Shown piece after piece: positions 10,474 to 60,011 of a DNA stretch of 64,000 nt. Within the stretch, counting starts at the first letter, position 1, and each line of letters opens with the position of its first letter. The notes beneath the pieces are model-generated. The model was not told the DNA's origin and did no database searches. It saw nothing but the letters and a program-made list of their open reading frames with translations. The translations under genes were made by a program, and so were the position numbers. The stretch is from positions 62,001-126,000 of the IMG/VR virus record IMGVR_UViG_3300020473_001965; one strand, given 5' to 3'.

Positions 10474-10956
10474 CTAAGCAATCTCAATTTTTCTTGTTTT
10501 CGGTTCCGAGTTGTCAGGTACTACCTTTGGAATCTCCAAGGATAGAATACCGCTTTCAAATCCTGCGGAAATCTTCTTACTATCTAGATTGTCGTTTAGA
10601 GTAAAACTACGTCTAAATGAAGACCTCTTGATCTCTCTCTTTACATATTGAGAATCTGTGACACCTTCATTCTGATTGCTTGTTCCTACAATTGACAACA
10701 CCCCGTCTGTTACTTCAACGTTAATATCTTCTTTAGATAGGCCTGGAATTGCAGCTTCAATTAAAATATGGTCTTCGTGATTTATCACATTTACTTTAGG
10801 GTAGCTCCCCTTGGAAAAGAACTCATCCCCAAACTCCCGATGAAATGCCGGGAACATGTCTGTTAACATATCGTCAAATAGACGATCAAATGGAGTTAAA
10901 AACTCCCTCTTGGTCAGAGAACGTGGATTAACACGTCTACGAATAATTGCACTCAT
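10474..10956 (-). CDS. Small heat-shock protein Hsp20/alpha-crystallin
   Basis: YPKVNV, AIPGLSKEDINVEV.DGVL, F.RSFTL, A.FESGIL.LEIPK. Confidence 0.92.
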   Translation of the reverse strand: MSAIIRRRVNPRSLTKREFLTPFDRLFDDMLTDMFPAFHREFGDEFFSKGSYPKVNVINHEDHILIEAAIPGLSKEDINVEVTDGVLSIVGTSNQNEGVTDSQYVKREIKRSSFRRSFTLNDNLDSKKISAGFESGILSLEIPKVVPDNSEPKTRKIEIA

Positions 10957-11071: not shown

Positions 11072-11695
11072 TTAACTTTTTTGATATGGTGCGTTCAATA
11101 AGCTGTCTACAACATCCTGAAGGTGTACTTTGATCGCATCGTAAACAAGTGAGCGTGCTTCATCATGAAAGCTTGCCTCACCAGGCCCGCCTAAATCTTC
11201 AGCTGCAACCTGAAGGACCGGTATCATCGCATCGCGAAGTGCTGCCTTATTCTCTTCACCAAACAGCGGGGCAATTGCATCAGAGAGTGCTTGAGTGTGC
11301 TGCGCTCGCAAGACGCTGAGACCTCCTTCGGGCACAGCCATGTGGCTTATCTCTTCCTTAATAATCTGTCTAAGCTGTCGTCTTGTAATTTTGATTGTTG
11401 ACTCTGTGTATCTTTCAATCCTTTTTCCTGACGGTATGGACTCTGGTTCCATATCAGCCAGCGAGTCTAAACTATAAGGAATGTTTGCTCTGCTTCCTGG
11501 ACCTCCGGTAATCATGTCTAATATGTCGTCAAGCTCATCTTGATTATAGGCAATTTCAGATTGAGCCCTACCGTTTAAATCATATCCCACCACAATGGGA
11601 AATTCAGCATCAGCAATGTTCTTCCCAAGATTATGCCTTGGATGTGCCATTTCTTCTTCAATAATCTTTCTAAGCCGGGATTTTGTAATTTTCAT
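11072..11695 (-). CDS. Leader-tagged protein with two leader copies
   Basis: MKITKSRLRKIIEEE and internal IKITRRQLRQIIKEE. Confidence 0.75.
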   Translation of the reverse strand: MKITKSRLRKIIEEEMAHPRHNLGKNIADAEFPIVVGYDLNGRAQSEIAYNQDELDDILDMITGGPGSRANIPYSLDSLADMEPESIPSGKRIERYTESTIKITRRQLRQIIKEEISHMAVPEGGLSVLRAQHTQALSDAIAPLFGEENKAALRDAMIPVLQVAAEDLGGPGEASFHDEARSLVYDAIKVHLQDVVDSLLNAPYQKS

Positions 11696-11839
11696 TTTAT
11701 TTTCTCGCGGTGGTCTTTACTCATATCTAAAATCTCATGAATCATTATCGATCGTTTAATCATTGTCTCTAAAATTATTTGAACAACCCTTACTTTCAGC
11801 ATCTTCTGCATAGAAATATATATTACCGAGCCCTGAATT

Positions 11840-12550
11840 ATGCAGCACATCAAAGACCTTAATGTAGAAAGAATAAGAGTTATTACAGTTGCGAAGGTCG
11901 CTAGTTCCGCATTCTCTCACTCTCTCAGTGACAAATATAAGACTAGTCATGGACACTCACTAGCGCTTCTTAAAAAGTGTCTAGAAGAAGAAGAAAACAC
12001 TCTTGTCATCTCAGGCATTAGAAATCCTCTTGCGAGAAATCTATCATACTTTTTCCAAACGTATTCAGACGTCGGGCGCAATGATGTAAAATGCAAGTCA
12101 AATAAATACAAGGGTGAAAAGTGCTATGTTATGGAAAAAGATAAAATATTAAGTTTAAGCACAGAAGAGGTCGTCCAAAAATTCTTTGATCAAAAATGGC
12201 ACAACACTTTTAATGATTGGTTTGAAGAGTTTTTTGAAATCACAGATATCGATGTAGTCTCATTTGATAAAGAATCTGGGTATCAGCTCTACTCACTAGA
12301 CAATAACAACTGGATTCTATTCTATACTTTTGAAATGTTTTCAAAGAACAAGTCAAAATTTGAGAGATTCTTTGATATTAAAAGACTCGCGCACACAAAC
12401 AATGCAGACAAGAGAATTTATGGCGAAGTATATAGAAGCGTAAAAGCATCAATTAAATTCCCTAAGTCATACAAACAAAAGTTACTCAACACAGAAATTA
12501 TCAATCGATTCTACAGTAAAAGTGATATTCAGAAGTTCTGGGCCATGTGA
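11840..12550 (+). CDS. Putative capsular-polysaccharide-synthesis (NKWYS-like) / sulfotransferase-fold protein
   Basis: AKVASS..., IRNPLARNLSYFFQ, WFEE; plus-strand gene inside a minus-strand array. Confidence 0.55.
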   Translation: MQHIKDLNVERIRVITVAKVASSAFSHSLSDKYKTSHGHSLALLKKCLEEEENTLVISGIRNPLARNLSYFFQTYSDVGRNDVKCKSNKYKGEKCYVMEKDKILSLSTEEVVQKFFDQKWHNTFNDWFEEFFEITDIDVVSFDKESGYQLYSLDNNNWILFYTFEMFSKNKSKFERFFDIKRLAHTNNADKRIYGEVYRSVKASIKFPKSYKQKLLNTEIINRFYSKSDIQKFWAM

Positions 12551-12753
12551 TGAAATTTAAAATTTCTGATCACGCTCTAGCAGTTCCTGACATGCAAGTA
12601 GGTGATCTTGTCAAGATAGGTCGCATCGGCAAAGAATACGGCTTGATCCTCAGCATTCATGACTCGAAAAGCATTATTCAAGTATACTGGCCAGAAAGCA
12701 ATGAAATAGGCTGGGAGAAATGCGTTAGAATGATTGTTGTATCTAGAGCCTAA
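12547..12753 (+). CDS. Small SH3-like protein
   Basis: QVGDLVKI...YGLIL...VYWP. Confidence 0.5.
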   Translation: MMKFKISDHALAVPDMQVGDLVKIGRIGKEYGLILSIHDSKSIIQVYWPESNEIGWEKCVRMIVVSRA

Positions 12754-14744
12754 ACAGGCTTAAGATCAGCCAGTTCTTTGATTGCTTCAAGAATCACATC
12801 TCGAACGAGGCCTTTTCTCATAACACCCTCGACTTGTGTCTCGCCAGAGGCTTCTACAGCCGTTGACTGCAATTCTTTTACAGCAGATTTCAGGTCTTTT
12901 ATTCTATCATTTATCTGGTCTATCTTGTCTGGGTCTTCTTCTGCATCGATTTGACTGAGCAGGTCTTGTATCTCTTTGTTTGCTGATGCTACATTGTCTG
13001 TTACTACAGCTTCAATGTCCACGGGTGTTTCGTTGATTACATTTGTTAGCAAAGCTGCGAGATCGCTCTTTCTTATCTTAATGTTTTCTCTTACGTCGTT
13101 TGCGACAGGACGACCAAGACTCGGAGAATAAGCACTCAAGGCGTAATCAGAAGCAGTCACTCCTGCGCGCCAGGCATCCCATGGGCCACCGTAATCATCA
13201 CTTGACATGTCAGCAGGCATCTTATCAACAACTTCATAATTCAAAGCTTTTGCAAGGTCCCTACTCCACTGTCCGAACCCAGAGGCTTCAATGTCTGCCA
13301 TTTGGGCGTCAACGTCGTAAGAGCCTTCTTTTAGGTTTTTTGTAAGTTCGGCGACACGTGTCTTTACCGCTGAAAGAAAACCTGACGACGAGCCACCTAT
13401 TTCATCGCTGGGAATCGGTGTTAAGCCAGAGCCTATGTCAGGCCCCCACATTTCGCCAGAAACCCAAGGACTGCCCGTCCACTTAAACTGATACGGCTTC
13501 GACGCTCCTGGGAGCGTTACTATGAACCCGATGTATTTGCCTTCTTCGTACGGGTTGTAAGAAGTCATCTTTCTTTTGTAGCCGCTCTGAGTCACCTTTA
13601 TTCCTGAAAGTGCTTCTCGCACTTCAGTCACCTGATCGTCTGTTACGGACATTAAGCTTGCAGCCGGACCTGACCATTCGAGGCCTCGACCAGAAATACC
13701 CCAACCCTTAGATTGCCAACCGCCCTGGTTGAGAATTTCTTTGGCTTCTCGGGGTGCTGAAGCTCTACTCTGCCTTGCGATGGTTTTGGCGCCATGATAT
13801 CTTTGTGCTCTTCGTCTGTCTGGGTGTAGATTGTCATCCCAGTCTCCTGACATCGCTTCACGAATCATCTGGAGCAATTCACCCTTAGAGACAGTCCGGA
13901 CTGCACCTTCTGTTGTTTTGCTCTTAGATTGAAATGGTCCGCGGAGATCTGTATTAATATCGCGCCATAGATCAACATCATCGTCAAGCCCCTCCCGATG
14001 GCGGACATACCACTCGGAGTCGGGATCTGAATACGGCTCTAACTCTTCAGGTGTAGATCTTCGCCACTTCGGATTGTCTGCAAGCCACATGACAAAGTCG
14101 GCTTCAAAAACATCTTCACCATAGATTTCTCCAGTAAGCGAATCCACGATATCTCTCATCCCATGTTTTTGAGACAAGCGTTCTGCAGACGCTTCTAGGT
14201 CTGTAACTTTCTGGGTCCATGACTCGTAAACACGCTTTACTTGATCGTCATATCCCCAAACAAGCCTGTTATATTCTGGCCCTCGGGTGAGAATCTTTCC
14301 TTCAAACCCGGGTCGTCCATTCTTAATATCGTCTTCTTTAAATTCAACTTCTACGCGGTGGCGTGTGCCGGAGTTGTCGACAAAGAGGATTTCGTCGCCC
14401 ACTTTATAGCTTACGTCTTGGTGCCCGTATCTGGTGAGCGCGCTCTCTCTGATGTGATTCTGTTGCGCCTGCCTTATAAGATTGCCTGCCAGGCCTTGTG
14501 CAAATTCGTGGGCTGACGCGAGCGGCTTAGCGTGGTAGTGTGGTGCGCCGTAGCCGCTGCTTTTATTGTCCGCTACGATCGCTGATGCATCTTCTTTTGT
14601 GTAAAGCCCTGCTACTCCGCTAGGGGTGCTAGGGTCAGGGTCTCCAAAGACAGGGCTACCGTCATTTCTAGAATCTCGCATGCGAGGCCACAGACTCTGC
14701 TGGCCTCGTCCAAAGTTTGCAATAACTACATAAAGGTCGTCCAT
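12750..14744 (-). CDS. Multi-module polyprotein-like protein with internal leader-like helices
   Basis: VSKGELLQMIREAM, ENIKIRKSDLAALLTNVINE, VMRKGLVRDVILEAIKE; internal SH3-like YKVGDEILF module. Confidence 0.65.
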   Translation of the reverse strand: MDDLYVVIANFGRGQQSLWPRMRDSRNDGSPVFGDPDPSTPSGVAGLYTKEDASAIVADNKSSGYGAPHYHAKPLASAHEFAQGLAGNLIRQAQQNHIRESALTRYGHQDVSYKVGDEILFVDNSGTRHRVEVEFKEDDIKNGRPGFEGKILTRGPEYNRLVWGYDDQVKRVYESWTQKVTDLEASAERLSQKHGMRDIVDSLTGEIYGEDVFEADFVMWLADNPKWRRSTPEELEPYSDPDSEWYVRHREGLDDDVDLWRDINTDLRGPFQSKSKTTEGAVRTVSKGELLQMIREAMSGDWDDNLHPDRRRAQRYHGAKTIARQSRASAPREAKEILNQGGWQSKGWGISGRGLEWSGPAASLMSVTDDQVTEVREALSGIKVTQSGYKRKMTSYNPYEEGKYIGFIVTLPGASKPYQFKWTGSPWVSGEMWGPDIGSGLTPIPSDEIGGSSSGFLSAVKTRVAELTKNLKEGSYDVDAQMADIEASGFGQWSRDLAKALNYEVVDKMPADMSSDDYGGPWDAWRAGVTASDYALSAYSPSLGRPVANDVRENIKIRKSDLAALLTNVINETPVDIEAVVTDNVASANKEIQDLLSQIDAEEDPDKIDQINDRIKDLKSAVKELQSTAVEASGETQVEGVMRKGLVRDVILEAIKELADLKPV

Positions 14745-14754
14745 GTCTTACTCC

Positions 14755-15540
14755 CTAATTTGAAAATGGTACGTAGAGGTTTGTGTTTAACTTGTAGCCT
14801 CCGGCTTCCACATCTGCTTTAGCTTCTGCGTACGAAACAGATCGTGTAGCATCTTCAGCACCTCCAGCGCTTTCTGGAATGTAGACGGCTGCGTGTCGAG
14901 CGCCGCTCTTTGGAATGACAATTATTACACCGTTATTTTGATTGTATTGCATGGGCCCGATGTTTCCGTCACGTTCCTGCTTAAGCAGCCACTCAAGATC
15001 GCTCTCTCTTCCCGGAATTGGTATACCAGAAACTGTTACAAATCCGCGCGGGATTCGAAACTCATTGAGAAGTTGAATCTCTTCTTTAATAATCTGTTGT
15101 AGTTTTGCTTTGGTTATCTTCATGGTGTTCTCCATTGGACCGGCAGGAGGTGCTGCAGTTGGTGGAACTTGAATCGTTGCGCCGCTCATGTCAGAATGAG
15201 CTGTTTGGAAGCTTACGAACTGCGGGTGCTGCTTAAACATTCCCTTGATCACGTCCTTGATCAGCTGGCCCTGTTGCATCATCTCATCTTGAGTGTATCC
15301 CAGGCTTGATAACCACTCTAACAATTGAGGCTCACTTCTGCTTTTCTTCATAGCATTAAAGACAATGTAAAGCCCCATGTCGACTTGGCTTGACCATTCA
15401 AGCTCTGCAGCCCCGTATCGAGGTGCTGATTTTCCAGGTACCGGTGATAGTTCGTTGTGTATTTGATGAACCCGTTCAGATAGCACGCGGCTCAACTCTT
15501 CTTTAATAATCTGTCTTAATTTGTTTTTTGTGATTTTCAT
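14755..15540 (-). CDS. Leader-tagged protein, two leader copies
   Basis: MKITKNKLRQIIKEELSRVLSE (start re-called to 15540); internal MKITKAKLQQIIKEEIQLLNE. Confidence 0.75.
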   Translation of the reverse strand: MKITKNKLRQIIKEELSRVLSERVHQIHNELSPVPGKSAPRYGAAELEWSSQVDMGLYIVFNAMKKSRSEPQLLEWLSSLGYTQDEMMQQGQLIKDVIKGMFKQHPQFVSFQTAHSDMSGATIQVPPTAAPPAGPMENTMKITKAKLQQIIKEEIQLLNEFRIPRGFVTVSGIPIPGRESDLEWLLKQERDGNIGPMQYNQNNGVIIVIPKSGARHAAVYIPESAGGAEDATRSVSYAEAKADVEAGGYKLNTNLYVPFSN

Positions 15541-15556
15541 TTTGCTTCCTTTGACC

Positions 15557-16627
15557 TTAATCATACATTGGGGGTGTGTGTCTGACTGGTGCCCGCTTCT
15601 TGCGTGGCTTGGCACCATAAGCATAAAGCACATCTTCAATTTGTTTTAGAGTAAATCCTGCACGTTGTGCTTGATCGGCTGTAATATTACCATAGTCGGT
15701 GCCGCCGTCCTTGTATTCAATATTAATGTTACTTGGCTCGCCACCCTTGCGACGGACCTGATACGTTATCTTCTTGATATCATCCTTAGCTATGTAATCC
15801 ATTGTCAGTGAATTGCCGATAACTTCTCTTTCTCCTGGGTTTGGGTCCGCTTGATGCGCTGCATCCATGTCGGCACCACGCTGGTTCATCCAGGCAGACT
15901 CAAGATCTCTCATGAACTTACGTACTTTGTCAAGATCCCAGTTATCTGGAACGACAGCATCTTGAGAAAAAGACCCGTCGTTCCGACCTACCTTGTTTAC
16001 CCATCCGTTCATTGCGTCAAGGTCTAAGTCAAGATTCTCGTAGTTAACCATTTCATCAGCAAGCGCACCTTGAATGTCATTCGTAAGTGCATAGTTTGCA
16101 ACCCTGTTCATGGTATCCAGATCTTCATAAGGGTTTACCATAATTGGAAGCATTTTGCGCTCGCTGAGTATGGCTTCGCGTATAATTCTTCTAAGCTGTG
16201 ACTTCTTGATTCTCATCTTTCCCTCTGTGGCTGGAGGTAAATCATAGTCTGGTAGACCATGATCACCTGATTCTTGCCACTCACCTTTTCCATTCCAAAA
16301 TCCTGATGGATCTGCATCGGCAGGTGGTGGTCGTTCATGCCAGCCTTCTTGTTTAATGAGTGCTAATAGTTCGCTGTCATGCATCCACTCAGTTTTAGCA
16401 CCAGGATTTGCTCCGAAAACAACAAGAACGTTTGCACCCGGAGGGACTGGATCACCAAGGTCTATTGCGGCACTCACTGTCTCAGGCGAAGCTATGTCAT
16501 TGATATATCGAACTTCTCCGTCACGCGTGAATGTAACATTCCGCCAAGCAAAATGATCTTCAACCCAAGTGGGCACAGATACCACCTCTTGAATTATTCG
16601 CCTGAGCTGTGACCTCTTGATTCTCAC
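15557..16627 (-). CDS. Leader-tagged protein, two leader copies
   Basis: MRIKRSQLRRIIQEV; internal MRIKKSQLRRIIREAILSE. Confidence 0.75.
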   Translation of the reverse strand: MRIKRSQLRRIIQEVVSVPTWVEDHFAWRNVTFTRDGEVRYINDIASPETVSAAIDLGDPVPPGANVLVVFGANPGAKTEWMHDSELLALIKQEGWHERPPPADADPSGFWNGKGEWQESGDHGLPDYDLPPATEGKMRIKKSQLRRIIREAILSERKMLPIMVNPYEDLDTMNRVANYALTNDIQGALADEMVNYENLDLDLDAMNGWVNKVGRNDGSFSQDAVVPDNWDLDKVRKFMRDLESAWMNQRGADMDAAHQADPNPGEREVIGNSLTMDYIAKDDIKKITYQVRRKGGEPSNINIEYKDGGTDYGNITADQAQRAGFTLKQIEDVLYAYGAKPRKKRAPVRHTPPMYD

Positions 16628-16770
16628 TGTGATAAACTCCCTATGAATCCCATTACCATTACTACAACAAATACTGTTAATGGTATCATTGCTGCTGCCA
16701 TCATACCTAAATCTTTTGGTGTGACTCCTCGATGATCCATCCAGTCTTTGAGTTTTTTTATTGGCTTCAT
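16624..16770 (-). CDS. 48-aa membrane protein (below ORF-track cutoff)
   Basis: MKPIKKLKDW...MIPLTVFVVVMVMGFIG; 4-nt overlaps on both sides. Confidence 0.55.
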   Translation of the reverse strand: MKPIKKLKDWMDHRGVTPKDLGMMAAAMIPLTVFVVVMVMGFIGSLSQ

Positions 16771-16892
16771 TTCTTCTTGTCCTTGTTTTTCTTGACAGGG
16801 ACGGGCTGAAGCGCTGGCTGCAATCCCAGCAAAGCTGCTAGATCATCAATAAATTCGCTCACCTTGGCTCGAATGTCATCAAAGATTTTCAT
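16767..16892 (-). CDS. 41-aa hypothetical protein (below ORF-track cutoff)
   Basis: MKIFDDIRAKVSEFIDDLAALLGLQPALQPVPVKKNKDKKK*. Confidence 0.5.
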   Translation of the reverse strand: MKIFDDIRAKVSEFIDDLAALLGLQPALQPVPVKKNKDKKK

Positions 16893-16897
16893 TTTAT

Positions 16898-17296
16898 CTA
16901 GCCTGTTGTTGTTGCGTACACACTGTAAATGTCGTACTGATCTAAATCACCGATTTGCTGTATAAGCGCAGGGTTGCGGCCGCGCTCTATCGCGGATTGG
17001 ACGTTTCCTCTCACTCCTGGATCAGAAAGGTCAAGCAGTGTTACTGCCCTAAACATGTCTTCGGGTGTGATTGATGGTGCACCCTTTGGCACAAATTCCA
17101 ACCAAGCTCTGTCCCGAGGATGAATTCTTCTTCCATCGAATGTGGTAGTACCGCCTGTTCCAACCTTCCCGTGATAAGGGCCTGAGAGAGCGTCATCCAA
17201 ATAAGAATCGGATTCACTGAGGCCTTTTCTTTCACTCAGAAATCTTGAGACTTCCTCTTTTATAATCTGCTGAATTCTTGATTTAGCTATTTTCAT
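16898..17296 (-). CDS. Leader-tagged protein
   Basis: MKIAKSRIQQIIKEEVSRFLSE. Confidence 0.75.
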   Translation of the reverse strand: MKIAKSRIQQIIKEEVSRFLSERKGLSESDSYLDDALSGPYHGKVGTGGTTTFDGRRIHPRDRAWLEFVPKGAPSITPEDMFRAVTLLDLSDPGVRGNVQSAIERGRNPALIQQIGDLDQYDIYSVYATTTG

Positions 17297-17580
17297 TTTA
17301 AGGCCTTGGCGTCGTCGAGCTGACCTCGCTCGACTGTTGCTGTTAGATCCTCAATGAATTCATATGCAGCCGCTCGGCGATCGCCGGGATCGCGTATCGA
17401 CATAAGAGCATTGATCACATCTTTCATAGCAGTACCCAAATCGTCTTCTTCGTACTCATACTCCTTGAGCATTTCTTGACGCTCAGCATTTGAGCCAAAC
17501 TCTTTCTTGCTGGTCTGCCTGTTAAGTTTTGCAGCTTCCTCAGCAACAATTCTTTTAAGTTGTTTCTTGGTAATTTTCAT
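17293..17580 (-). CDS. Leader-tagged protein
   Basis: MKITKKQLKRIVAEE...MLKE. Confidence 0.75.
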   Translation of the reverse strand: MKITKKQLKRIVAEEAAKLNRQTSKKEFGSNAERQEMLKEYEYEEDDLGTAMKDVINALMSIRDPGDRRAAAYEFIEDLTATVERGQLDDAKALK

Positions 17581-17589
17581 TTTTATCCT

Positions 17590-17850
17590 CTACAATCTAA
17601 TGTTTCTTAGTCTTCTGTCCCTGACTATTGCTGCAGGTAGTTCTCCTAGCTCGAGATCTCTCTTTACTTGTGTCAGCTGTTCGGGGAAGAGTCGACCCTT
17701 GTCGACTTCGAACTCTACTTGACGCAGGAGTTCTGCCTTTTGTCGCTCAATCTCAGCGTTTTCACTAAGAGCATTAAGCACTTGCAGCTCTTCTCTTACT
17801 ATTTGACGAAGCTTTTTCTCTGTTAGTTTCACTATCTTCCTCGCTGCCAA
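17590..17850 (-). CDS. Leader-tagged protein
   Basis: VKLTEKKLRQIVREELQVLNALSE. Confidence 0.7.
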   Translation of the reverse strand: MAARKIVKLTEKKLRQIVREELQVLNALSENAEIERQKAELLRQVEFEVDKGRLFPEQLTQVKRDLELGELPAAIVRDRRLRNIRL

Positions 17851-18083
17851 GAATAGGCGAACCCATGCTTGCTAAAAAATGCGTTGAGCACCTCATCCAA
17901 CTCGGTTTCAAAGCCTACCGGAAGCAGACCGTGCTTGAGATCAGATTCAATGTTTACACTCAAGGTGTGCATTCCGCCGGCTGAGGGCCACATTCTAGCA
18001 GATGCTGTGCTGTTCGATTCGTTTAAAATCTTTTTCTGCTCTTCTTGGATGATTCTTCTGAGTTGTGACTTTTTGATTTTCAT
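17832..18083 (-). CDS. Leader-tagged protein
   Basis: MKIKKSQLRRIIQEEQKKILNE. Confidence 0.75.
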   Translation of the reverse strand: MKIKKSQLRRIIQEEQKKILNESNSTASARMWPSAGGMHTLSVNIESDLKHGLLPVGFETELDEVLNAFFSKHGFAYSWQRGR

Positions 18084-18089
18084 GATATC

Positions 18090-18290
18090 CTACTTTGCTG
18101 TTTGCGCTTGAGACAGCATCGCTGCTAGACGGTCTAGCTTTTTTCCTATGTCTGTTTCTTCGCCTACATCGTCAACTAGGCTAAACAGTTCCTGTCTTAC
18201 CTTTTCTATTATTTCATTCTTTTTTGACTCTGCCAACCGATCCTTCTCTTCTTGGATGATTCTTCTGAGTTGTGACTTCTTGATTCTCAT
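18090..18290 (-). CDS. Leader-tagged protein
   Basis: MRIKKSQLRRIIQEEKDRLAE; start re-called to 18290. Confidence 0.75.
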   Translation of the reverse strand: MRIKKSQLRRIIQEEKDRLAESKKNEIIEKVRQELFSLVDDVGEETDIGKKLDRLAAMLSQAQTAK

Positions 18291-18571
18291 TTTCTCTCCC
18301 AAGCTCCTCTTGAAGCTAAGTTTACTAGGGCAGGGATCACTTTGCCCCTCACGTACTCAAGTGCGTCTTGATAAACGTCATCGCCGTACAAGCCCGTGTC
18401 AAAGTTCTTCTGATCACTCTTGACGGCGCCGTCTTCAATCATCACTTCAACAATCTCATCGACGAGCTGTGCTACGCTGTGGTAGTCGGGACCAGCTTCG
18501 ACGCGAGCTTCCTGAAGGTTGGCAGCTTCTTCTTTGATTATCTGTCTAAGTTGTTTCTTTGTAATTTTCAT
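18287..18571 (-). CDS. Leader-tagged protein
   Basis: MKITKKQLRQIIKEEAANLQE. Confidence 0.75.
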   Translation of the reverse strand: MKITKKQLRQIIKEEAANLQEARVEAGPDYHSVAQLVDEIVEVMIEDGAVKSDQKNFDTGLYGDDVYQDALEYVRGKVIPALVNLASRGAWERK

Positions 18572-18572
18572 T

Positions 18573-18845
18573 TTAAGCTCTCGGTACCGACTTTAAGAAA
18601 TTGTGCACTAACTTGAATGCCTTTTTTAATTCTAGAAATTTCTGAGGTGTCAGCTCACCCGCATCGCGTTGCCTCATTGCTAGCGCAGGAAGGACACTGC
18701 TAAGATCTACAGCTACATCGGACGGGTGTTTCTCGTGCGGCAAGTGGTCGTCCTCGATGTCGCCGGGGCGCGTGTACGCATCAGCAATCAATCTAGCCTG
18801 CTCTTCTTGGATGATTCTTCTAAGTTGTGACTTCTTGATCTTCAT
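18573..18845 (-). CDS. Leader-tagged protein
   Basis: MKIKKSQLRRIIQEEQARLI; start re-called to 18845. Confidence 0.75.
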   Translation of the reverse strand: MKIKKSQLRRIIQEEQARLIADAYTRPGDIEDDHLPHEKHPSDVAVDLSSVLPALAMRQRDAGELTPQKFLELKKAFKLVHNFLKSVPRA

Positions 18846-32094: not shown

Positions 32095-33726
32095 TCAAGT
32101 CTTGGTTGCTTCATCTTCTTGATATTCTGTTAGCTCACGAGCAGACGGATCGTTCACATCTGACCAGTTGGGCATCCAAAATTTTGGTATCGTTAACGTT
32201 GCAGGTTTTCCAAAGAATTTCTCAAAGACCTTCCTATAATAATAGCTTTCTTTCAACACGGGTGTGCACGGGTGAAGTCGACTCCCATGTTTTGCAAACT
32301 CACCGTCTGAGACTACAGTGTTTACATGTTGCTGAATTATTTTGTGCCAAGAGTTTTCCCTTGTGGATACTGCATCAGAAAAAGCGCACTTAGTTCTATT
32401 AAGCACATCAAGTGGCAAGAGGCCTGTCTCAGAAAAAGCAGATCGAAGCAAGTTCTTTTCAGGGACTTCTCCGCCAAATCGCTTTAAGCCCACTGGAAGG
32501 CTCATATAATAGTCTACGAAATCTCGATCAAGAAAGGGTGTTCTTGCTTCGAGGCCGTGCGACGATACAGATCTGTCTGATCGGAGGACATCATAGATAT
32601 GGATTTCTCGCAATAGCTTTAAGTTTTCTTCAAAAAACGCTGCGTTGCTCGGTGCATTTATATTATAAAGATAGCCCATAGCAACTTCATCAGACCCATC
32701 TCCGTTGAACACCACCTTGACGTCAGTGTTCTCCTTAATATATTTCCCTACAAGATAATTCCCCACCGATGCTCTCACTGTTGTCGTGTCATACGATTCA
32801 ATGCTGTAGATTACCGCTTCTATTGCATCAACAAACTCTTGAGCGGTCGCTTCAACAACATGATGGTCAGAGCCTATCCAGTCTGCAACCTTTTGTGCAT
32901 AGACGACATCAGGACTGCCCGGCATTCCAATTGAAAACGTTTTTATTCTTTCGCTTGTCATAGAGTTGGCAAGGCTCGCTATCAGACTAGAGTCTAGGCC
33001 GCCTGATAGAAGACAGCCTATTTCTCTGTCAGACATCATTCTCTTTTCTACAGCTGATGTTAAAAGATTTTGTATCTGTGTCGTTGCTTCTTCAAAGCTT
33101 GCATTGTTATCGGGTTTATAGTCACAATCAAAATAACTGTAAAACGACTGGGGCGTTTCAGACGACCACCAAGAGCCCGGTGGAAAGTGTTGTATCTTTT
33201 CTGCGATATCAGACATTGCCTTGATCTCAGAAGCTACAAAATATTCACCAGAAGATGCTCCAAAGAAGCTTGGTCGTACTCCGTAACGATCTCTAGCTGA
33301 GTAAAGTATTCCTTCCTTTTTGTCGTATAAGGACAGTGCGAATACTCCGTCGAGCTCTCTACATGTTCTGTTCATTCCAAACTTAGCAAACATGTGTATT
33401 ATAATTTCGCAATCAGAGTTTGTCTCTGTCTTGAAATTGTACTTCTCGCTGAGCGTTTTGTGATTGTAAATCTCTCCGTTGCAAATCAACCAGTACCTTT
33501 GAAGGTTGGCTTTTCTTAAGTTCATTGGCTGGCCGGACTTTTCGTCTAACCCATTAATTGCAAGACGATGGAACCAGAGCACAGCCCTTGCCTTTGATTT
33601 TAAAGTGAGCTTGTTTTTAAATTCTTCAAATTCTGTCTTGTCGGGTCCACGGTGCTGAATTTTTGTAAAATGCTTGTCCAGCTCCCGCAAACTTCTATTC
33701 CCTAGATAACCTACAAACCCACACAT
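32095..33726 (-). CDS. asnB: Asparagine synthase (glutamine-hydrolysing)
   Basis: N-terminal MCG, HRGPD, NGEIYN, RD.YGVRP, LLSGGLDSS, GDGSDE, EARTPFLD. Confidence 0.92.
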   Translation of the reverse strand: MCGFVGYLGNRSLRELDKHFTKIQHRGPDKTEFEEFKNKLTLKSKARAVLWFHRLAINGLDEKSGQPMNLRKANLQRYWLICNGEIYNHKTLSEKYNFKTETNSDCEIIIHMFAKFGMNRTCRELDGVFALSLYDKKEGILYSARDRYGVRPSFFGASSGEYFVASEIKAMSDIAEKIQHFPPGSWWSSETPQSFYSYFDCDYKPDNNASFEEATTQIQNLLTSAVEKRMMSDREIGCLLSGGLDSSLIASLANSMTSERIKTFSIGMPGSPDVVYAQKVADWIGSDHHVVEATAQEFVDAIEAVIYSIESYDTTTVRASVGNYLVGKYIKENTDVKVVFNGDGSDEVAMGYLYNINAPSNAAFFEENLKLLREIHIYDVLRSDRSVSSHGLEARTPFLDRDFVDYYMSLPVGLKRFGGEVPEKNLLRSAFSETGLLPLDVLNRTKCAFSDAVSTRENSWHKIIQQHVNTVVSDGEFAKHGSRLHPCTPVLKESYYYRKVFEKFFGKPATLTIPKFWMPNWSDVNDPSARELTEYQEDEATKT

Positions 33727-34616: not shown

Positions 34617-34692
34617 TGGAGCGGGTGATGGGACTCGAACCCACAACGTACAGCTTGGAAGGCTGTCACTCTACCAGTTGAGTTACACCCGC
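34617..34692 (-). tRNA. tRNA-Gly (TCC)
   Basis: GCGGGTGTAACTCAACTGGTAGAGTGACAGCCTTCCAAGCTGTACGTTGTGGGTTCGAGTCCCATCACCCGCTCCA; cloverleaf with CCA. Confidence 0.95.
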
Positions 34693-34701
34693 AATTCGTC
34701 G

Positions 34702-35130
34702 CTATTCTTGAATATCTACAAGCTCTATTTCAAAATTTAAAGTTTTCCCTGCAAGCGGGTGATTAAAGTCGATAACAGCTTCTTCGTCTGTGAAAGAGCT
34801 GATTACTCCTCGGAACGTTCCCGTCTCATTTTGTGCCTGAACTACTCCGCCTACAGCAAATTCCATCTCTTCAGGAAACTGGGTCCTGGGAACAGTTGCA
34901 ACTGCTTGTTCGTCAATGGGTCCGTAAGCATTGTCAGGTTCGATTGTAACATTTTTCACTTCTCCTACTTGCATTCCTAAAAGCGCAGAATCAAATCCTC
35001 CAATAACTCTACCCTCGCCTACCTGAAATTCTAGAGGCATTTCTCTATCATAAGAGTTATCAAACTCCATTCCATCATCGAGTGTTCCTCGATAGTGAAC
35101 GCTAACTGTATTTCCGTTTTCTACTTTCAT
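34702..35130 (-). CDS. FKBP-type peptidyl-prolyl isomerase (SlyD/SlpA-like)
   Basis: VSVHYRGTLDDG.EFDNS, AYG, DFNHPLAGKTLNFEIEL. Confidence 0.92.
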   Translation of the reverse strand: MKVENGNTVSVHYRGTLDDGMEFDNSYDREMPLEFQVGEGRVIGGFDSALLGMQVGEVKNVTIEPDNAYGPIDEQAVATVPRTQFPEEMEFAVGGVVQAQNETGTFRGVISSFTDEEAVIDFNHPLAGKTLNFEIELVDIQE

Positions 35131-35172
35131 TTTTCCTTCTTTCTTTTGTGCATTTTGCACGGTTATTAGTGC

Positions 35173-35415
35173 TTAACGCACAACTTTTAGTTTTTCTACC
35201 CAGACTGGCAAAGATAACTCGGACCGACCAGATCCGTAAATTGCACTCTCTGGTACTTTGAATGGTACTAGTTCGTCTGAACCGCCTACCCAGTGCAATC
35301 TATCTGCAACTACATCGAACAAGAGTGTTTCTTGATCTTCAGTGGGATAATAGAACCCGTTGTAGCCGCGCTTGCTCATTCGAACTGTGTCACCTTTTTT
35401 GATTGTAATTTTCAT
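35173..35415 (-). CDS. Small SH3-like protein
   Basis: IKKGDTVRM. Confidence 0.5.
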   Translation of the reverse strand: MKITIKKGDTVRMSKRGYNGFYYPTEDQETLLFDVVADRLHWVGGSDELVPFKVPESAIYGSGRSELSLPVWVEKLKVVR

Positions 35416-35425
35416 TTGATGCTCC

Positions 35426-35794
35426 TCAGCAACCTTTTAAAACGTCTATTTCTTCCCAGGCACCCTGCCAGTTTGTGTACCTGACTTTAGCTATCCCAGC
35501 CTTTTTCATCTCTTGCATGCAGAGATAACATGGGCGTGCCATTGTCCATCGATGATCATGCTTTGTAAATCTAATAACTTCAATTTCATCTCCCGGTTTT
35601 GCAAATCTCAATACATTCATTTCTGCGTGCATGTGCGAAGCCCATGTACCATCCTCATATTGTCGCTTAAACCTTGGGTGAGTCTTATCAGTATTTTCAC
35701 CTATCTTCACGACCTTGCCTTTTCTTCGTAAGATAGCAGCCAAATGATAGGTTCTACCATTGCTGATCGCTTTTTCTTTAGCTCGATAGTACAC
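35426..35794 (-). CDS. Zn-dependent deaminase (cytidine/dCMP deaminase fold)
   Basis: HAE and ARPCxxC motifs. Confidence 0.75.
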   Translation of the reverse strand: MYYRAKEKAISNGRTYHLAAILRRKGKVVKIGENTDKTHPRFKRQYEDGTWASHMHAEMNVLRFAKPGDEIEVIRFTKHDHRWTMARPCYLCMQEMKKAGIAKVRYTNWQGAWEEIDVLKGC

Positions 35795-35815
35795 TTGGCA
35801 TGATGCCCTCCTTAG

Positions 35816-35903
35816 TGGCGGAAGCGGTGAGATTCGAACTCACGATACGTTTCCGTATGCCGGTTTTCAAGACCGGTGCCTTAAGCCGCTCGGCCACGCT
35901 TCC
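35816..35903 (-). tRNA. tRNA-Ser (TGA)
   Basis: GGAAGCGTGGCCGAGCGG...CTTGAAA...GTTCGAATC...CTTCCGCCA; long variable arm. Confidence 0.95.
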
Positions 35904-35905
35904 AG

Positions 35906-36505
35906 TTAAACTTTCCATAATCCTGACTGATTTCCAATACCAGTCCATCTTGGCCGGACGGTTCGTGAATAGAGATCCAAGTATGGACCTTTGCTTCTTT
36001 CCTCAACAAAAGAGTAAAATTCTTCAGGCTTTCGAGAATGCTGTCGCCTCTGAGCGAAAATATAATCCTTAGAACCGCACAGACCCTTTCCGTTGGGAAC
36101 TGACTCTTTCTCATTTGTCCCTGAATACCTTGTTCTTTTTCCCATTCCCTTTCGATATCTTACAGCAAAAATACACATCTCAGTGTATCTCATTCCGTAC
36201 GGGGTAGGGCTTCCCACATTTGACTTTACCCATGGGATCAAGCTGATTGGTTTGAAACCTAGCGCATCACAAACTTCAAGCGCAGGTAAAATCCCTTGAT
36301 CTTTCCCAGCTGTAAATGAATTAACTGTCCACATGTACATATGGGCTTCAGGAGCGACAGGATGCTTCTTAAACCACTCTGATATCGTGCAAATTATCTC
36401 GCCCTTAGACTGAACATTGTAATGAGTCGAAGGTTGTAAAGTTGCATGACCCACACCCCCTGTGGTCTTTCTCCAAGGTGGGTCTATTACGATAGTTTTA
36501 TACAT
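35906..36505 (-). CDS. MT-A70-family N6-adenine methyltransferase
   Basis: IVIDPPW, HSRKPEEFY, LDLYSR..R..W...GNQ. Confidence 0.85.
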   Translation of the reverse strand: MYKTIVIDPPWRKTTGGVGHATLQPSTHYNVQSKGEIICTISEWFKKHPVAPEAHMYMWTVNSFTAGKDQGILPALEVCDALGFKPISLIPWVKSNVGSPTPYGMRYTEMCIFAVRYRKGMGKRTRYSGTNEKESVPNGKGLCGSKDYIFAQRRQHSRKPEEFYSFVEERSKGPYLDLYSRTVRPRWTGIGNQSGLWKV

Positions 36506-36520
36506 AGCTTATCCATAAAA

Positions 36521-36596
36521 TGGCTCCCCGAGCAGGACTTGAACCTACGACCCGCTGATTAACAGTCAGCTGCTCTACCAACTGAGCTATCGGGGA
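36521..36596 (-). tRNA. tRNA-Asn (GTT)
   Basis: TCCCCGATAGCTCAGTTGGTAGAGCAGCTGACTGTTAATCAGCGGGTCGTAGGTTCAAGTCCTGCTCGGGGAGCCA. Confidence 0.95.
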
Positions 36597-40969: not shown

Positions 40970-43367
<2,398 letters not shown>

Positions 43368-55811: not shown

Positions 55812-57290
55812 TTAAGGATTTGCTGCCTGATTTAAACTCCATGCTGCGGCGCCCGTTATTACTATCCCACCGACGACCCCTAGCGCAAACCAAAGTTCAT
55901 TCTTGGGCTTTGATGCTTTTTCAAGCCGGGTGTCGAGAAAATCAATTTGACCATTTTTAATGGCTAGCATTTCATTATAATTGGTCTCTAGACGCAAGGT
56001 TTTTGCACTTAAGTTATCGATCTCAAGTTGATATTCAGCCCTTACCAAATTTACTCTTCTGTCAACTTCAAGCTGGCAGCTCTCTTCAGTTAGCTCTATT
56101 TGAGCTAGAAGACTTGCGGCCGCGGCTGTACTGAACAGTGTGCCTGAATATGGTGCTATTTCACCTTTTTCCAGCGTTGTCACAAGCTTTGCTTGTTCAC
56201 TTATATCATCAGCCTCGTCACCATAAACTGGTAACGGTGCTACTAAAAGTGCTATCGAAGTAATCCAAGCTGCAATTTGTCTCATCATATTAATCTATAT
56301 CAACAACAGTAAAACCAGTTAAATCAGCAATCTGCTTGGTTATCTCATCCGGGTCTTCACTATTATCTTGTATTAACTTTTTAATTCTTTTCTTTTTTTC
56401 TGCATCTAGCTTTTTTGACTCAGACTCATATTTTTCTTCGATCTGCTTGATTGCAACCTGATATCTTTTGTTTGCAGCATCACGATCTTCCAGCTCTTTT
56501 TCATGAGAGCTCTTTAGAGCATTGATCTCATCTTCGTAAGCCTTCTTGCGCTCGTTCAGTATTTTAGAAAAGTCTACTGGTTTTCGGCTAATTATCAAAA
56601 CTATAATTCCTGCCCCTACCAGGAAAACAACGTGACCGTTGACTTTAATCCAAGCCCAGGCTTTTTTTGCCCAATGCTTTAGCTTTGAAGCCAAGGTCAG
56701 CGCTGTATTAGCAATGCTTAACGCTTGAATCATTTTCCATGCTTCCAGGAGATCGCAGCATCAATAACAGTCTGGCCTCCAATGTAAATCATAGCAATCA
56801 TTCCCCACGTATCTGCATCTAGGTAGTTATAGCCTAGCAATGCTGTAGCTGTCAAGAACACAAAGAATTTTCTAGAAATCAATCTTCCCATGATCTGGTC
56901 GATTAACCCTAGCTTTTCTCCTTCAATAGCAGCCTGTACCTGCTTAACATCAATATCATTGTCAGCCATAAACATACCTTATTTCTCCTACTCTTCAGTA
57001 GCTTCAGCTTCAGCAGGCTCAGCCGCACCAGTAGTATCAGTTCCCTCTACTGTTGTTGCAGCAGGGGCTGTTGCTTCTGTTGCTTCAGCTGTCTCTGTAG
57101 TTCCTGTAGTTTCTGTATTGCCTGTAGCTTCTGTGGTCGTCTCTTCTGACGATTCTTCGACTGCAGGTTCTTCAGCAGCTGGGGGTTCGTACGAGCACGT
57201 ACCATAAGCAGAAGCGACTACTAGTACACCTCCTACTACACTTATTTGAACCTTCCATCTGTTCCATAGTTCTTTTGCTTTATCTAACAT
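55812..57290 (-). other. Membrane-protein cluster (55812-56288, 56290-56733, 56730-56975 two-TM holin-like, 56988-57290 A/E/T-rich)
   Basis: Hydrophobic segments and coiled coils. Confidence 0.5.
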
Positions 57291-57931: not shown

Positions 57932-58549
57932 CTACGCTAGTTTTGATGCACCCGCTCCTACGGCAATTGGTGTTTCAAGATCATCATTCATAGTACCGCT
58001 AGGACGAGTAAGTGTATCAAGTTTTTCATCAACTTCATCGGCGGACGCTTTGTCATATCGATCTAGCATAAATTGTCGAGCTCTATTTTTAATTGTCGTC
58101 TCAACATTAATCAAGTTGTTAAAGTTATTAATTAACCGTGAGATTCTCTCAGCAAAAGCATCAGCGTTAAGGGGCTGCTGAACTTCTTCTCCTGGGTCAT
58201 CAACGGCTACTGAAGAGTTGTCCACAGTTAGGCGCACATCATAGCCTGCTTGCTTTAATTTCTCAATCATGTTTTTAATGTCATCATCGGAGGCTGCGTC
58301 CGGGTCTTCTTCAGGCGTCGGTTCAGCATCTTCAGCTTCTTCGCCTTCTTCTTCTTCAAAGAGGTAACCTAGTGCTGATCTAAGTGTTTTAGATTCATCA
58401 GCTCTTTCCATCGCTGAATCTGCTTCATACTGTAACAATAATGCATCAATCTGACGATCTATCGAATCTTGCTCTTCAGCAGCACCCTCAGAAATCAGTT
58501 TTAGCTCTTCTCTTATAATTCTTCTCAGTATTGCTGCTTCCTTTTTCAT
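57932..58549 (-). CDS. Leader-tagged acidic protein
   Basis: MKKEAAILRRIIREELKLISE; start re-called. Confidence 0.65.
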   Translation of the reverse strand: MKKEAAILRRIIREELKLISEGAAEEQDSIDRQIDALLLQYEADSAMERADESKTLRSALGYLFEEEEGEEAEDAEPTPEEDPDAASDDDIKNMIEKLKQAGYDVRLTVDNSSVAVDDPGEEVQQPLNADAFAERISRLINNFNNLINVETTIKNRARQFMLDRYDKASADEVDEKLDTLTRPSGTMNDDLETPIAVGAGASKLA

Positions 58550-58550
58550 T

Positions 58551-58949
58551 TTAGCTATCCTGTATTCCAGCTCTTTGCTTGCCCAGTTCAGCACCCTTAC
58601 CTAACTTCTTGGCTTTTGAAGTGGTTACATTTTGCTCTACAAATGTAGTTAACATATCATCAAAAAACTGAATTAAGGCCGGGATTTCTGTTGAAGTTAT
58701 GTTCTGTGCGCCTCGAAGTGCCTTCATCATATAGTTTCCTGCTTCTGTTTTATTTGTAGGCATCTTTGCACCTTGCAACTTCGGCTGGTATTCTTTTCCG
58801 GCGGCACCTAGTTCAGCTTGGTCTCCTTCGGGGGCATCTTCTTGACCAGGTTGATTCTCAGATATAACTCTCTTGGACAGCTCATTGAGCTTCTTAATCT
58901 GCAATTGGTTTCTAACAATCTTTCTAAGTTTTGATTCTGTAATTTTCAT
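58551..58949 (-). CDS. Leader-tagged protein
   Basis: MKITESKLRKIVRNQLQIKKLNE. Confidence 0.7.
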   Translation of the reverse strand: MKITESKLRKIVRNQLQIKKLNELSKRVISENQPGQEDAPEGDQAELGAAGKEYQPKLQGAKMPTNKTEAGNYMMKALRGAQNITSTEIPALIQFFDDMLTTFVEQNVTTSKAKKLGKGAELGKQRAGIQDS

Positions 58950-58956
58950 TGTGTTC

Positions 58957-59640
58957 TCACTTAAGTGCTTTTGCGATCTTCTCAGCTCGCTTAAATCGGT
59001 CCTCGATGACTTGCCAGTTTAGTTCCTTCATCATCGCGTATACATAAGACTTTCTCTTTGAAAGATAGTCCCTGTAATATGAGTGCTCCCACACGTCGAC
59101 GACAATCACGGGATAGAATCCGACCGGAACATTAAGGCTGTGTAAGTCGATTACTGTGTTCATGTATCGTTGCGTGTATGTGTTGTAGCCTGTGACTACC
59201 CAACCATTTCTGGCAGACTTTGCACATGCTATAAAGTCTTCTTGCCATGCATCGAAAGATCCGAAGTCTCTCTCAAGACGCATAAAAGAGAGTGTGTCCA
59301 TAGAAACTTCGCTTTGGACATCGCTAATGTTGTTAAAGAAGAGCTCGTGTAGATAAGCAGCGTTCATGTTGTACGTTTCATCCACTTTCAAGCTTCGGAA
59401 GTAAGAATGATTTAAGCCCGCCTCATCTCGATTTGCGGCGTCGAGCTCAGCTGAGACTCTATTAAATGTTTTTACATAGTTCTCATACAAGCCCTCATGT
59501 GCGTGCTTGTTCTTTTGGGTTAAAAGCTCAGTGGGCAAATCAAATTGCTTCTTTTGCAACACGAGTGCTTCATTAACTTCTTCTTCTTCGATTCCCAAGG
59601 AATCTCTGATTATTTCTCTTACACCATCTTTAGTAATCAT
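58957..59640 (-). CDS. Fe/Mn superoxide dismutase-family protein with leader-like N-terminus
   Basis: H..LY..YV, LHELFF, FGSFDAW, DVWEHSYY.DY; MITKDGVREIIRDSL...VNE. Confidence 0.85.
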   Translation of the reverse strand: MITKDGVREIIRDSLGIEEEEVNEALVLQKKQFDLPTELLTQKNKHAHEGLYENYVKTFNRVSAELDAANRDEAGLNHSYFRSLKVDETYNMNAAYLHELFFNNISDVQSEVSMDTLSFMRLERDFGSFDAWQEDFIACAKSARNGWVVTGYNTYTQRYMNTVIDLHSLNVPVGFYPVIVVDVWEHSYYRDYLSKRKSYVYAMMKELNWQVIEDRFKRAEKIAKALK

Positions 59641-60011
59641 TAGTCCACCACATATTCTTTTTCTAAATCTTTCTTGCTAACTTCTAGAGATTCCACTTCG
59701 CCCGTATCCGGATTCACATACTCTAGATTGACTGAGTCGGGGCCGATATGACTAACTGTGTACTCATACCCGCGTGGCCCGCCATTGGGTAAATGTGTTA
59801 CTCGGGTATCGAGGCCAAGATTGTCCACCTTTACTCGAGGTTCTTGGTCTTTCGGCTTTTCATCTTTCTTTGTGTCACCCGGGTCTTCAACAGACTTGTC
59901 AGCCTTCATACCATCAGCCGGCTTTTCAGAAAGCTCCTTGATTACGTCACGAAGATGCTGATCATACTGATCACGCATCATTCGAATTATTTGTTTCTCT
60001 GTTAATCTCAC
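59640..60011 (-). CDS. Leader-like hypothetical protein
   Basis: GTG start after GGAAGG: MRLTEKQIIRMMRD...IKELSE. Confidence 0.55.
   Translation of the reverse strand: MRLTEKQIIRMMRDQYDQHLRDVIKELSEKPADGMKADKSVEDPGDTKKDEKPKDQEPRVKVDNLGLDTRVTHLPNGGPRGYEYTVSHIGPDSVNLEYVNPDTGEVESLEVSKKDLEKEYVVD

Follow-up and report, generated by a model that had tools for sequence, protein, structure and literature searches.

The 64,000-nucleotide stretch of DNA analysed here, referred to below as the window, spans positions 62,001 to 126,000 of IMG/VR virus record IMGVR_UViG_3300020473_001965 and belongs to a phage known from a 296,665-bp marine (Tara Oceans) contig (window coordinates equal those of the contig record minus 56,641). 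Its list of open reading frames (ORFs) shows, between 10 and 20 kb, a run of minus-strand genes whose products start with M(K/R)I(T/K)K.QL..II.EE, and this shared leader is the subject of the present work. A first-pass annotation of the DNA had counted ten genes with the leader in front of payloads without visible similarity, and had proposed that they encode diverse effectors packaged into the phage head for injection, in a manner analogous to the internal proteins of T4. The count was confirmed with a hidden Markov model (HMM) built from the leaders of other contigs only, which detected 13 significant copies (9-40 bits) in 10 ORFs, all of them on the minus strand between 11.3 and 18.9 kb. 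In the same interval and strand lay each of the 11 six-frame matches that the pattern [KR]I.[KR]..L..I[IV] gave in the 64 kb, where 0.09 would be expected by composition (100 shuffles: mean 0.09, maximum 1). The features of the block are the following, h-x-E standing for hydrophobic-x-E:

18573-18845, minus strand: gene J, 90 amino acids (aa); leader MKIKKSQLRRIIQEEQARLIA, first codon at 18845, occupying the first ~22 codons (18780-18845); 27.2 bits; no h-x-E at residues 19-24
18287-18571, minus strand: gene I, 94 aa; leader MKITKKQLRQIIKEEAANLQE, first codon at 18571, LQE at residues 19-21; 39.6 bits
18090-18290, minus strand: gene H, 66 aa; leader MRIKKSQLRRIIQEEKDRLAE, first codon at 18290, LAE at residues 19-21; start overlapping the stop of gene I (ATGA)
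17832-18083, minus strand: gene G, 83 aa; leader MKIKKSQLRRIIQEEQKKILNE, first codon at 18083, LNE at residues 20-22
17590-17832, minus strand: gene F, 80 aa, GTG start; degenerate leader (M)KLTEKKLRQIVREELQVLNALSE, first codon at 17832, LSE at residues 22-24; 12.4 bits
17293-17580, minus strand: gene E, 95 aa; leader MKITKKQLKRIVAEEAAKLNR, first codon at 17580, no h-x-E at residues 19-24; 28.5 bits
16898-17296, minus strand: gene D, 132 aa; leader MKIAKSRIQQIIKEEVSRFLSE, first codon at 17296, LSE at residues 20-22
16624-16892, minus strand: two leaderless small genes, one of 41 aa (16767-16892) and one of 48 aa with one transmembrane segment (16624-16770)
15557-16627, minus strand: ORF C, 356 aa, two in-frame modules; C1 leader from 16627 with a GTG start, C2 leader from 16216, MRIKKSQLRRIIREAILSE
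14755-15540, minus strand: ORF B, 261 aa from the ATG at 15540, two in-frame modules; B1 leader at 15540 (…ELSRVLSE, 40.1 bits), B2 leader at 15123 (…EEIQLLNE, 30.1 bits)
12750-14744, minus strand: 664-aa ORF inside the array; no significant leader HMM match, no Pfam match and a marginal PHROG match only
11840-12753, plus strand: two genes of 236 and 68 aa that interrupt the array; no Pfam match
11072-11695, minus strand: ORF A, 207 aa, two leader copies; A1 at the ATG at 11695 (28.0 bits), A2 at 11395 (34.0 bits)

The genes of the array adjoin or overlap at ATGA junctions, and for this reason the array looks like one transcription unit. The start and stop codons of the two leaderless small genes likewise overlap with those of their neighbours, and a terminator-like hairpin (11066-11045) is found directly 3' of the ORF A stop; the counts obtained in sigma-70 and terminator scans were near chance. 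The other leaderless genes of the block are the 664-aa ORF and the opposite-strand pair at 11840-12753, which sits beside it in mid-array and may have been inserted separately as a mobile element. In ORFs A, B and C the leader is present twice in the same frame with no intervening stop, and since the first codon of A2 is ATC (Ile), this copy is internal and cannot be a start codon. The leader is thus not confined to gene starts.

Once the first 24 residues were removed, no two payloads were similar (all pairs with BLASTP E > 0.01, in a tiny database), in agreement with what had been claimed. Relatives of individual payloads do exist elsewhere: homologs of the gene I payload (32-41% identical) occur in phage contigs L137 and L138, binned into metagenome-assembled genomes (MAGs), the gene E payload has homologs in L139 and L141, and the gene G protein is found on 14 contigs, the longest of 296,665 bp. 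The homolog of D in L066 bears a leader, as do the C2 homologs in L012 and L138, and gene F has an ATG start in strains L123 and L124. Domain searches with ten leader proteins gave nothing above threshold in Pfam and, in PHROGs, one marginal match (E 0.007) to a family of unknown function. Structure prediction was uninformative: the AlphaFold model of D was of low confidence and unreliable (predicted local distance difference test, pLDDT, 48), while that of C2, of moderate confidence (pLDDT 67), had no significant match in the PDB, yielding just two borderline matches with low template-modelling scores, both to uncharacterised proteins of jumbo Erwinia phages.

The leader defines a family that extends far beyond the window. 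In 266 unique proteins its logo reads M K I T K x Q L K/R Q/R I I K E E (L/I) x x h L x E, with conservation running through residue 22 and falling to background thereafter. I-K-E is present at residues 12-14 in 98% of the members. An h-x-E with its Glu at residue 21 or 22 is found in 59% of them, and one with its Glu at residues 18-22 in 72%, against a background of 2% per position. In the window, eight of the 13 copies have h-x-E at residues 19-24, including all seven cases that had been listed when (L/I)-x-E was said to be the usual sequel of the leader. Of the description of the leader as basic and amphipathic, the first part stands (median isoelectric point, pI, 9.3) and the second is not supported, its helical hydrophobic moment being equalled by 30% of shuffles. 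At the conserved positions every synonymous codon is used, including all six Leu codons at position 8, so that selection acts on the leader peptide; some codon skew is also seen there.

At least 120 IMG/VR stretches match a degenerate DNA pattern of the leader, and of the 308 copies in the matches listed, 285 follow directly upon a Met. The same pattern occurs in just 10 stretches of 185,579 species genomes, all of them MAG contigs that look like mis-binned phage, and one MAG contig of 306 kb carries more than 25 leader genes. When a 30-column leader profile was run against 1.84 billion proteins, 14,418 cluster representatives were recovered at E <= 0.001. Among the 150 best of these, most proteins have 2-4 leaders, spaced ~133 residues apart, and in one third of the internal copies V, N, T, L or K stands in place of the initial M; multi-leader proteins are therefore genuinely repetitive and do not result from the merging of gene calls. 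The leader is not represented by any single PHROG family, and its best match in a profile search of the PDB was a marginal one, to an S100B helix (E 0.035). The first-pass annotation had allowed that the leader might correspond to a known DNA-binding or oligomerisation domain, and none was matched in Pfam, PHROGs or the PDB. The T4 late-promoter motif TATAAATA was located upstream of just one of 266 leader genes, and letter-string and keyword searches did not find a description of the motif in the searchable literature.

Behind the leader, the proteins differ from it in charge. The payloads have a median pI of 4.9, with 68% below 6 (4.5-7.1 for those of the window), and D, E, G, S and A abound in the regions that follow the leader. 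Pfam domains were detected in a handful of 148 leader proteins, namely LRR in two and GNAT, FliG_C and DUF6321 in one each. Internal h-x-E sites occur in the payloads at 2% per position, which by a rough estimate is about what composition predicts.

That the array is modular and hypervariable, as had been proposed, was shown directly by comparing the window with contigs that are 97-99% identical to it, which revealed five insertion/deletion or replacement events:

Strain L124: payloads of J and I absent, by recombination of leader with leader, with the break between the leaders of J and H
Strain L123: payload of H swapped for an unrelated one of 100 aa, with the break ~46 nt into the gene, inside the leader
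Strain L124: insertion of 78 residues in D, directly after FLSER
Strain L124: different, stop-terminated C1 payload, with the break ~43 nt into C1, inside the C1 leader
Strain L124: payload of B1 absent, by recombination between the B1 and B2 leaders

In four of the five events the break falls inside a leader or at its end, the fifth being the deletion of J and I. As C1 ends in a stop in L124, C1 and C2 are separate genes in that strain. Leader DNA from unrelated contigs matches at 82-94% over 45-70 nt. The conserved leader DNA is thus a site of homologous recombination, at which near-identical strains gain, lose, swap and fuse cassettes, and this accounts for the in-frame fusions in ORFs A, B and C.

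A connection with head assembly became apparent in the relatives. Of the 120 leader loci among the matches listed, 48 contain a gp17-type large terminase, in many cases with a T4-type portal as well, and 25 an S77 protease. Leader genes recur at two sites, one of them upstream of three membrane-protein genes that precede the terminase and the other beside the protease gene, where they lie between the protease and c13 genes in L009 and just upstream of the protease gene in L015. In the contig of L051 (273 kb), three leader genes directly follow the capsid gene. Three large contigs (168, 255 and 273 kb) have both leader genes and a module of terminase, portal, S77 protease and capsid genes, at separate places; that of L066, a distant relative of the window phage with a few shared protein homologs (22-47% identity), is one of them.

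Just after the protease gene, two conserved families of small proteins, c13L and c90, were found whose N-termini resemble the leader. Proteins of the first have ~140-157 aa and start MAK.(S/T)R..LK..VKECL.EIL.EG, and those of the second have ~90 aa and contain K-L-T-P-x-L-L-K-K-L-V-L-E-E-K. In hhalign the leader profile matched c13L with 93.8% probability (E 1.8e-7) and c90 with 76.8% (E 2.1e-5), both alignments being N-terminal, and in both families an h-x-E directly follows the leader-like helix. The leader HMM scored above 5 bits on 63% of c90 members, compared with 0.7% of the remaining ORFs of these loci. The search for the leader on head proteins that had been recommended for this DNA was therefore positive, and it extends to the phage's own genome, which has a c13L homolog starting MAKVTKSMLKGIVKECLVEILSEG. 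When the features of these families were sought in the array, namely a helix of the form K-h-T-x-x-x-L-K-x-h-V-K/L-E-E/C followed by h-x-E, in a gene adjacent to an S77 gene, the array genes were found to have only the helix in common with c13L and c90, and they are for that reason leader-sharing proteins and not members of these families. As a portable module, the leader is found fused to unrelated proteins in their thousands; it resembles the N-terminal helix of c13L and c90 and was apparently derived from head-core proteins. The system had been described as unrelated in sequence to others; this is correct with respect to the T4 targeting sequences discussed below, and not in the sense of an orphan, as the resemblance to conserved head-core proteins indicates.

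Two further head-region observations concern other phages. In Flavobacterium phage immuto, a 73-aa protein of the head module, starting MKKSQIVKAVQEVLEE, resembles the leader, and the neighbouring gene in the scaffold position, annotated as a 'DNA polymerase phi-like protein', has an N-terminus (MSNKDLLKQAIAEAKTIRE) that is loosely leader-like; its product looks like a mis-annotated acidic scaffold. In a pelagimyophage-like group, a gene for ribosomal protein S21 is located in the head-module region after the protease and c13 genes (L045 11214-11456 and ~17 related loci).

The contig of the window phage itself encodes an S77 prohead protease (Peptidase_S77, PF03420; L233 221-832), a gene for which the first-pass annotation had advised searching. 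It is 35% identical to T4 gp21 (E 2e-24), with the GE.(D/N)HP and SSRG motifs, which contain the His and Ser residues, aligned. The head module includes this gene, a scaffold-like gene and a Gp23 capsid gene (PF07068), and it is preceded by a T4-type virion module with baseplate genes, two sheath-like genes, gp15 and gp13. In the capsid protein of L163, ILRE aligns with the maturation site LTE65 of T4 gp23, and the capsid protein of the window phage has the same motif, as LLRE, in its N-terminal stretch (no T4 alignment was made for this protein). These motifs suggest that processing of the gp21 type may be conserved.

Outside the array, the scan of the whole window with the leader HMM, another of the checks that had been proposed, returned just two weak sites in 64 kb, at 58528 and 58949. 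They belong to a second group of genes, which lies near three genes for membrane proteins:

57932-60044, minus strand: second, weaker leader-like cluster of four genes, with two HMM matches (12.4 and 7.5 bits)
59640-60044, minus strand: first gene of this cluster, 134 aa
58957-59640, minus strand: second gene, Fe/Mn superoxide dismutase (SOD)-like (PF02777 Sod_Fe_C), starting MITKDGVREIIRDSLGIEEE
58551-58949, minus strand: third gene, 132 aa, starting MKITESKLRKIVRNQLQIKKLNE
ATG at 58549, minus strand: fourth gene, acidic protein, starting MKKEAAILRRIIREELKLISE
55812-56975, minus strand: three membrane-protein genes, 81, 147 and 158 aa

The SOD-like protein (58957-59640) has the DVWEHSYY signature and an N-terminal extension of ~35 residues (MITKDGVREIIRDSLGIEEEE) that is loosely leader-like, below HMM significance; it could be an enzyme cargo. 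In ~30 related marine phage loci, homologs of the three membrane-protein genes stand between leader genes, which they directly follow, and the large terminase gene, which they precede, with their order kept. One of the proteins has a signal peptide and a C-terminal transmembrane segment, another a transmembrane segment and a coiled coil, and they possibly have a role in lysis or in membrane-linked assembly.

Among the remaining genes of the contig are those for GroEL, asparagine synthase, an ATP-dependent ligase, Hsp20, three tRNAs and a DnaE-type polymerase, the last of which is a reported marker of one group of marine jumbo phages (PMC9123017). Within the window lie a GroEL-type chaperonin (40970-42556), a glutamine-dependent asparagine synthase (32095-33726), Hsp20 (10474-10956) and tRNA-Gly, tRNA-Ser and tRNA-Asn (34617-36596), with SET-domain, lectin C, thymidylate synthase ThyX (two copies) and IMPDH-like genes in its flanks; to the left of the window only small early-type genes were seen. 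The contig also has a succession of very large ORFs that match no family, of 1309, 2908, 1040, 1150, 1049 and 1543 aa (L227 6071-18727, L231 1941-13745). The 1309-aa protein is 39% identical to a large ORF that closes the head-module region in pelagimyophage-like loci (L005, L009), and the 2908-aa protein has an N-terminus similar to that of a 425-aa protein of the same contig. No close cultured relative of the window phage was found. An identity as a T4-like cyanophage was rejected on the grounds of the DnaE-type polymerase and a different gene content, and hallmarks of the phiKZ type were not seen in the 154 kb of the contig examined.

The closest functional parallel is found in T4, where propeptides of 10-19 residues target unrelated proteins to the core of the prohead and are removed by gp21 (PMC9026906). 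As in the T4 capsid-targeting sequence (CTS) of IPI, IPII, IPIII and Alt, the marine leader is a short N-terminal tag on otherwise unrelated proteins that ends in (L/I)-x-E, and the genome in which it is found has an S77 protease of the gp21 type, a capsid protein of the gp23 type and a T4-type neck, sheath and baseplate. As in the T-even ip1 locus, the tagged genes are strain-variable and lie away from the head module (PMC9026906). The differences are that the marine leader is longer, with 22 residues compared to 10-19, that the arrays are far larger, as had been supposed (13 copies here and ~17 genes in 8 kb of a MAG contig), that one polypeptide may have 2-4 leaders, some copies being internal, and that the marine system, with its mostly acidic cargoes, is known from sequence alone. 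On these features the marine leader is a putative functional equivalent of the CTS that belongs to a different sequence family.

Other systems share some of these properties. According to two reports, the jumbo phages phiKZ, 201phi2-1 and SPN3US have many head-internal proteins whose propeptides are cut at x-E by gp21-like proteases (gp175, gp245), and ejection proteins of giant phages enter the cell (PMC5694885, PMC10052503). The marine set is different in that one strongly conserved leader marks the whole of it, and the window phage in that it has a DnaE-type polymerase. To our knowledge, the propeptides of the phiKZ-type phages share no single conserved leader. Their cleavage motif is (S/A/G)-x-E. 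T4 gp67, gp68 and gp22 are small proteins of head assembly whose genes neighbour that of the protease and which the protease cleaves, and c13L and c90 occupy a comparable position, with no significant sequence similarity between the two sets. T4 gp67 (L229 2282-2524) contains …DLIKEEKIAIARNFLIEGEE…, which loosely echoes the leader (IIKEE … h-x-E-G), at a non-significant 2 bits that may be due to chance. An analogy can also be drawn with the cargo-loading peptides of encapsulins and the encapsulation peptides of microcompartments, in which one short helical tag directs unrelated cargo into a protein shell; these tags are non-viral and are not removed by a maturation protease, and those of encapsulins are C-terminal. 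Finally, the Dar proteins of phage P1 are reported to be anti-restriction proteins that are packaged in the head and injected, and whose loading needs head-assembly factors (PMC12810830, PMC9024508). No homology to the Dar proteins was detected. We know of no shared cleavable leader described for them. Compared with these known systems, what stands out in the marine one is its scale, the multi-leader polyproteins, the apparent derivation of the leader from head-core proteins and its double role as a recombination site.

Taken together, these data make it probable, at roughly 0.65, that the 22-residue leader is a capsid-targeting propeptide of marine phages of the T4 superfamily, and the T4-like packaging proposed in the first-pass annotation is partly supported. 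The tagged proteins would co-assemble with the scaffolding core inside the prohead through the leader helix, mimicking the core proteins that have the same helix. The gp21-type S77 protease would then cut after the h-x-E that ends the leader and free the cargo; another site of cleavage may be the end of the invariant I-K-E (residues 12-14), and the cuts would separate the modules of multi-leader proteins. The cargo would remain in the DNA-filled head and enter the host with the genome, in which case the turnover of cassettes may reflect selection on proteins that are the first to meet the host, such as counter-defence or takeover factors.

Several observations weigh against this proposal. At residues 19-24, five of the 13 window copies are without h-x-E, and the enrichment of h-x-E and the sharp end of conservation could simply reflect where a conserved charged helix stops. 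No significant similarity links the leader to the T4 CTS (MKTYQEFIAE or the IPI propeptide), and its HMM scores below 0 bits on IPI, IPII and IPIII (NC_000866). The exact leader was found in no cultured phage when two leader proteins were compared by tblastn with 50,697 phage records, even at E <= 10, a result that constitutes weak evidence given the short query and the low-complexity filter being on. Megablast of the array block against the same records gave no match either, and the exact leader was not present in the first 100 kb of HTVC008M or in the 25-kb stretch of immuto that were scanned. With respect to gene location, the array is ~126 kb from the phage's own head module, among hsp20, ligase and small genes, and leader genes are present within 10 kb in just five of 80 capsid-gene loci. 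The cargoes are mostly acidic, whereas mature T4 IPI-III are basic (pI 9.0-9.7), and they consequently fit DNA-associated internal proteins less well; T4 Alt is, for its part, not a small basic protein of the IPI-III kind, and basic charge is typical of IPI-III rather than strictly defining. Lastly, the contig also encodes a ClpP-family protease (PF00574; L227 4190-4792, at ~159 kb of the record), followed by an amidase gene and then by that of the 1309-aa protein. Among the PHROGs it is best matched by 'head maturation protease' families (E 1e-23), so that the genome has, besides S77, a second candidate maturation protease.

The acidity of the cargoes brings up an alternative in which the leader does target the prohead, with the tagged proteins acting as accessory scaffold or core components that would give the large head its filling or shape and then be degraded and expelled, as are T4 gp22, gp67 and gp68, instead of being injected. 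Scaffolding proteins are likewise acidic, and the abundance of D, E, G, S and A after the leader, the likeness of the leader to conserved head-core proteins and the long acidic proteins of the second cluster in the window would all suit such a role. However, the diversity of the cargoes, a few of which carry LRR, GNAT, FliG_C or DUF6321 domains, would be unexpected of structural fillers, as would their turnover between near-identical strains, and the payloads show no excess of internal h-x-E sites. We consider this alternative unlikely.

It is also improbable that the leader is a helix for a partner other than the capsid, be it a hub protein of phage or host, the phage-encoded GroEL, Hsp20 or ClpP, or the leader itself by self-association, and that the genes encode cytoplasmic host-takeover proteins. 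In favour of this, hsp20, ligase and other non-structural genes surround the array of the window, a ClpP-like protease is encoded in the genome along with GroEL and Hsp20, the leader also occurs at internal positions and its sole resemblance in the PDB is to a generic helix. Relatives of the ClpP gene are found beside leader genes in L025, L098 and L118, and in L025 a pair of ClpP-like and amidase genes is directly upstream of two leader genes. Nevertheless, ClpP-like genes are present in three of the 120 leader loci among the matches listed, against the 25 with S77, and a partner of this kind would leave unexplained the profile similarity to the N-termini of two S77-adjacent head-module proteins, the leader genes beside the protease gene (L009, L015) or after the capsid gene and the presence of h-x-E at the exact end of conservation. 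That the conserved element acts as nucleic acid, as a recombination or translation-initiation cassette with a functionless peptide, is very improbable: the breakpoints at leaders, the 82-94% match of leader DNA between unrelated contigs and the codon skew point in that direction, but all synonymous codons are used at conserved positions, the amino-acid pattern is kept across thousands of diverged clusters, and internal copies without a start codon retain it.

A capsid-targeting propeptide thus remains the preferred interpretation of the leader. A broader picture can be drawn more tentatively, at somewhat less than an even chance, in which a loading tag derived from the head core marks more than 14,000 clusters of cargo, including polyproteins cut in the capsid, and leader-guided recombination reshuffles the injected arsenal of uncultured T4-superfamily phages of the ocean.

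If the leader is a capsid-targeting propeptide, it would provide a marker, readable from sequence, for the injected or head-internal proteins of uncultured ocean phages, a protein set that is otherwise invisible and that in T4 includes counter-defence factors. It is also a candidate for use as a tag with which foreign proteins could be brought into large phage heads. A tag that doubles as a recombination site explains both the turnover of cassettes and the in-frame fusion of several cargoes. The principle of the T4 CTS would then be no peculiarity of the T-even phages, but one that is widespread and scalable across the T4 superfamily, of which the 297-kb phage of the window would be one example.

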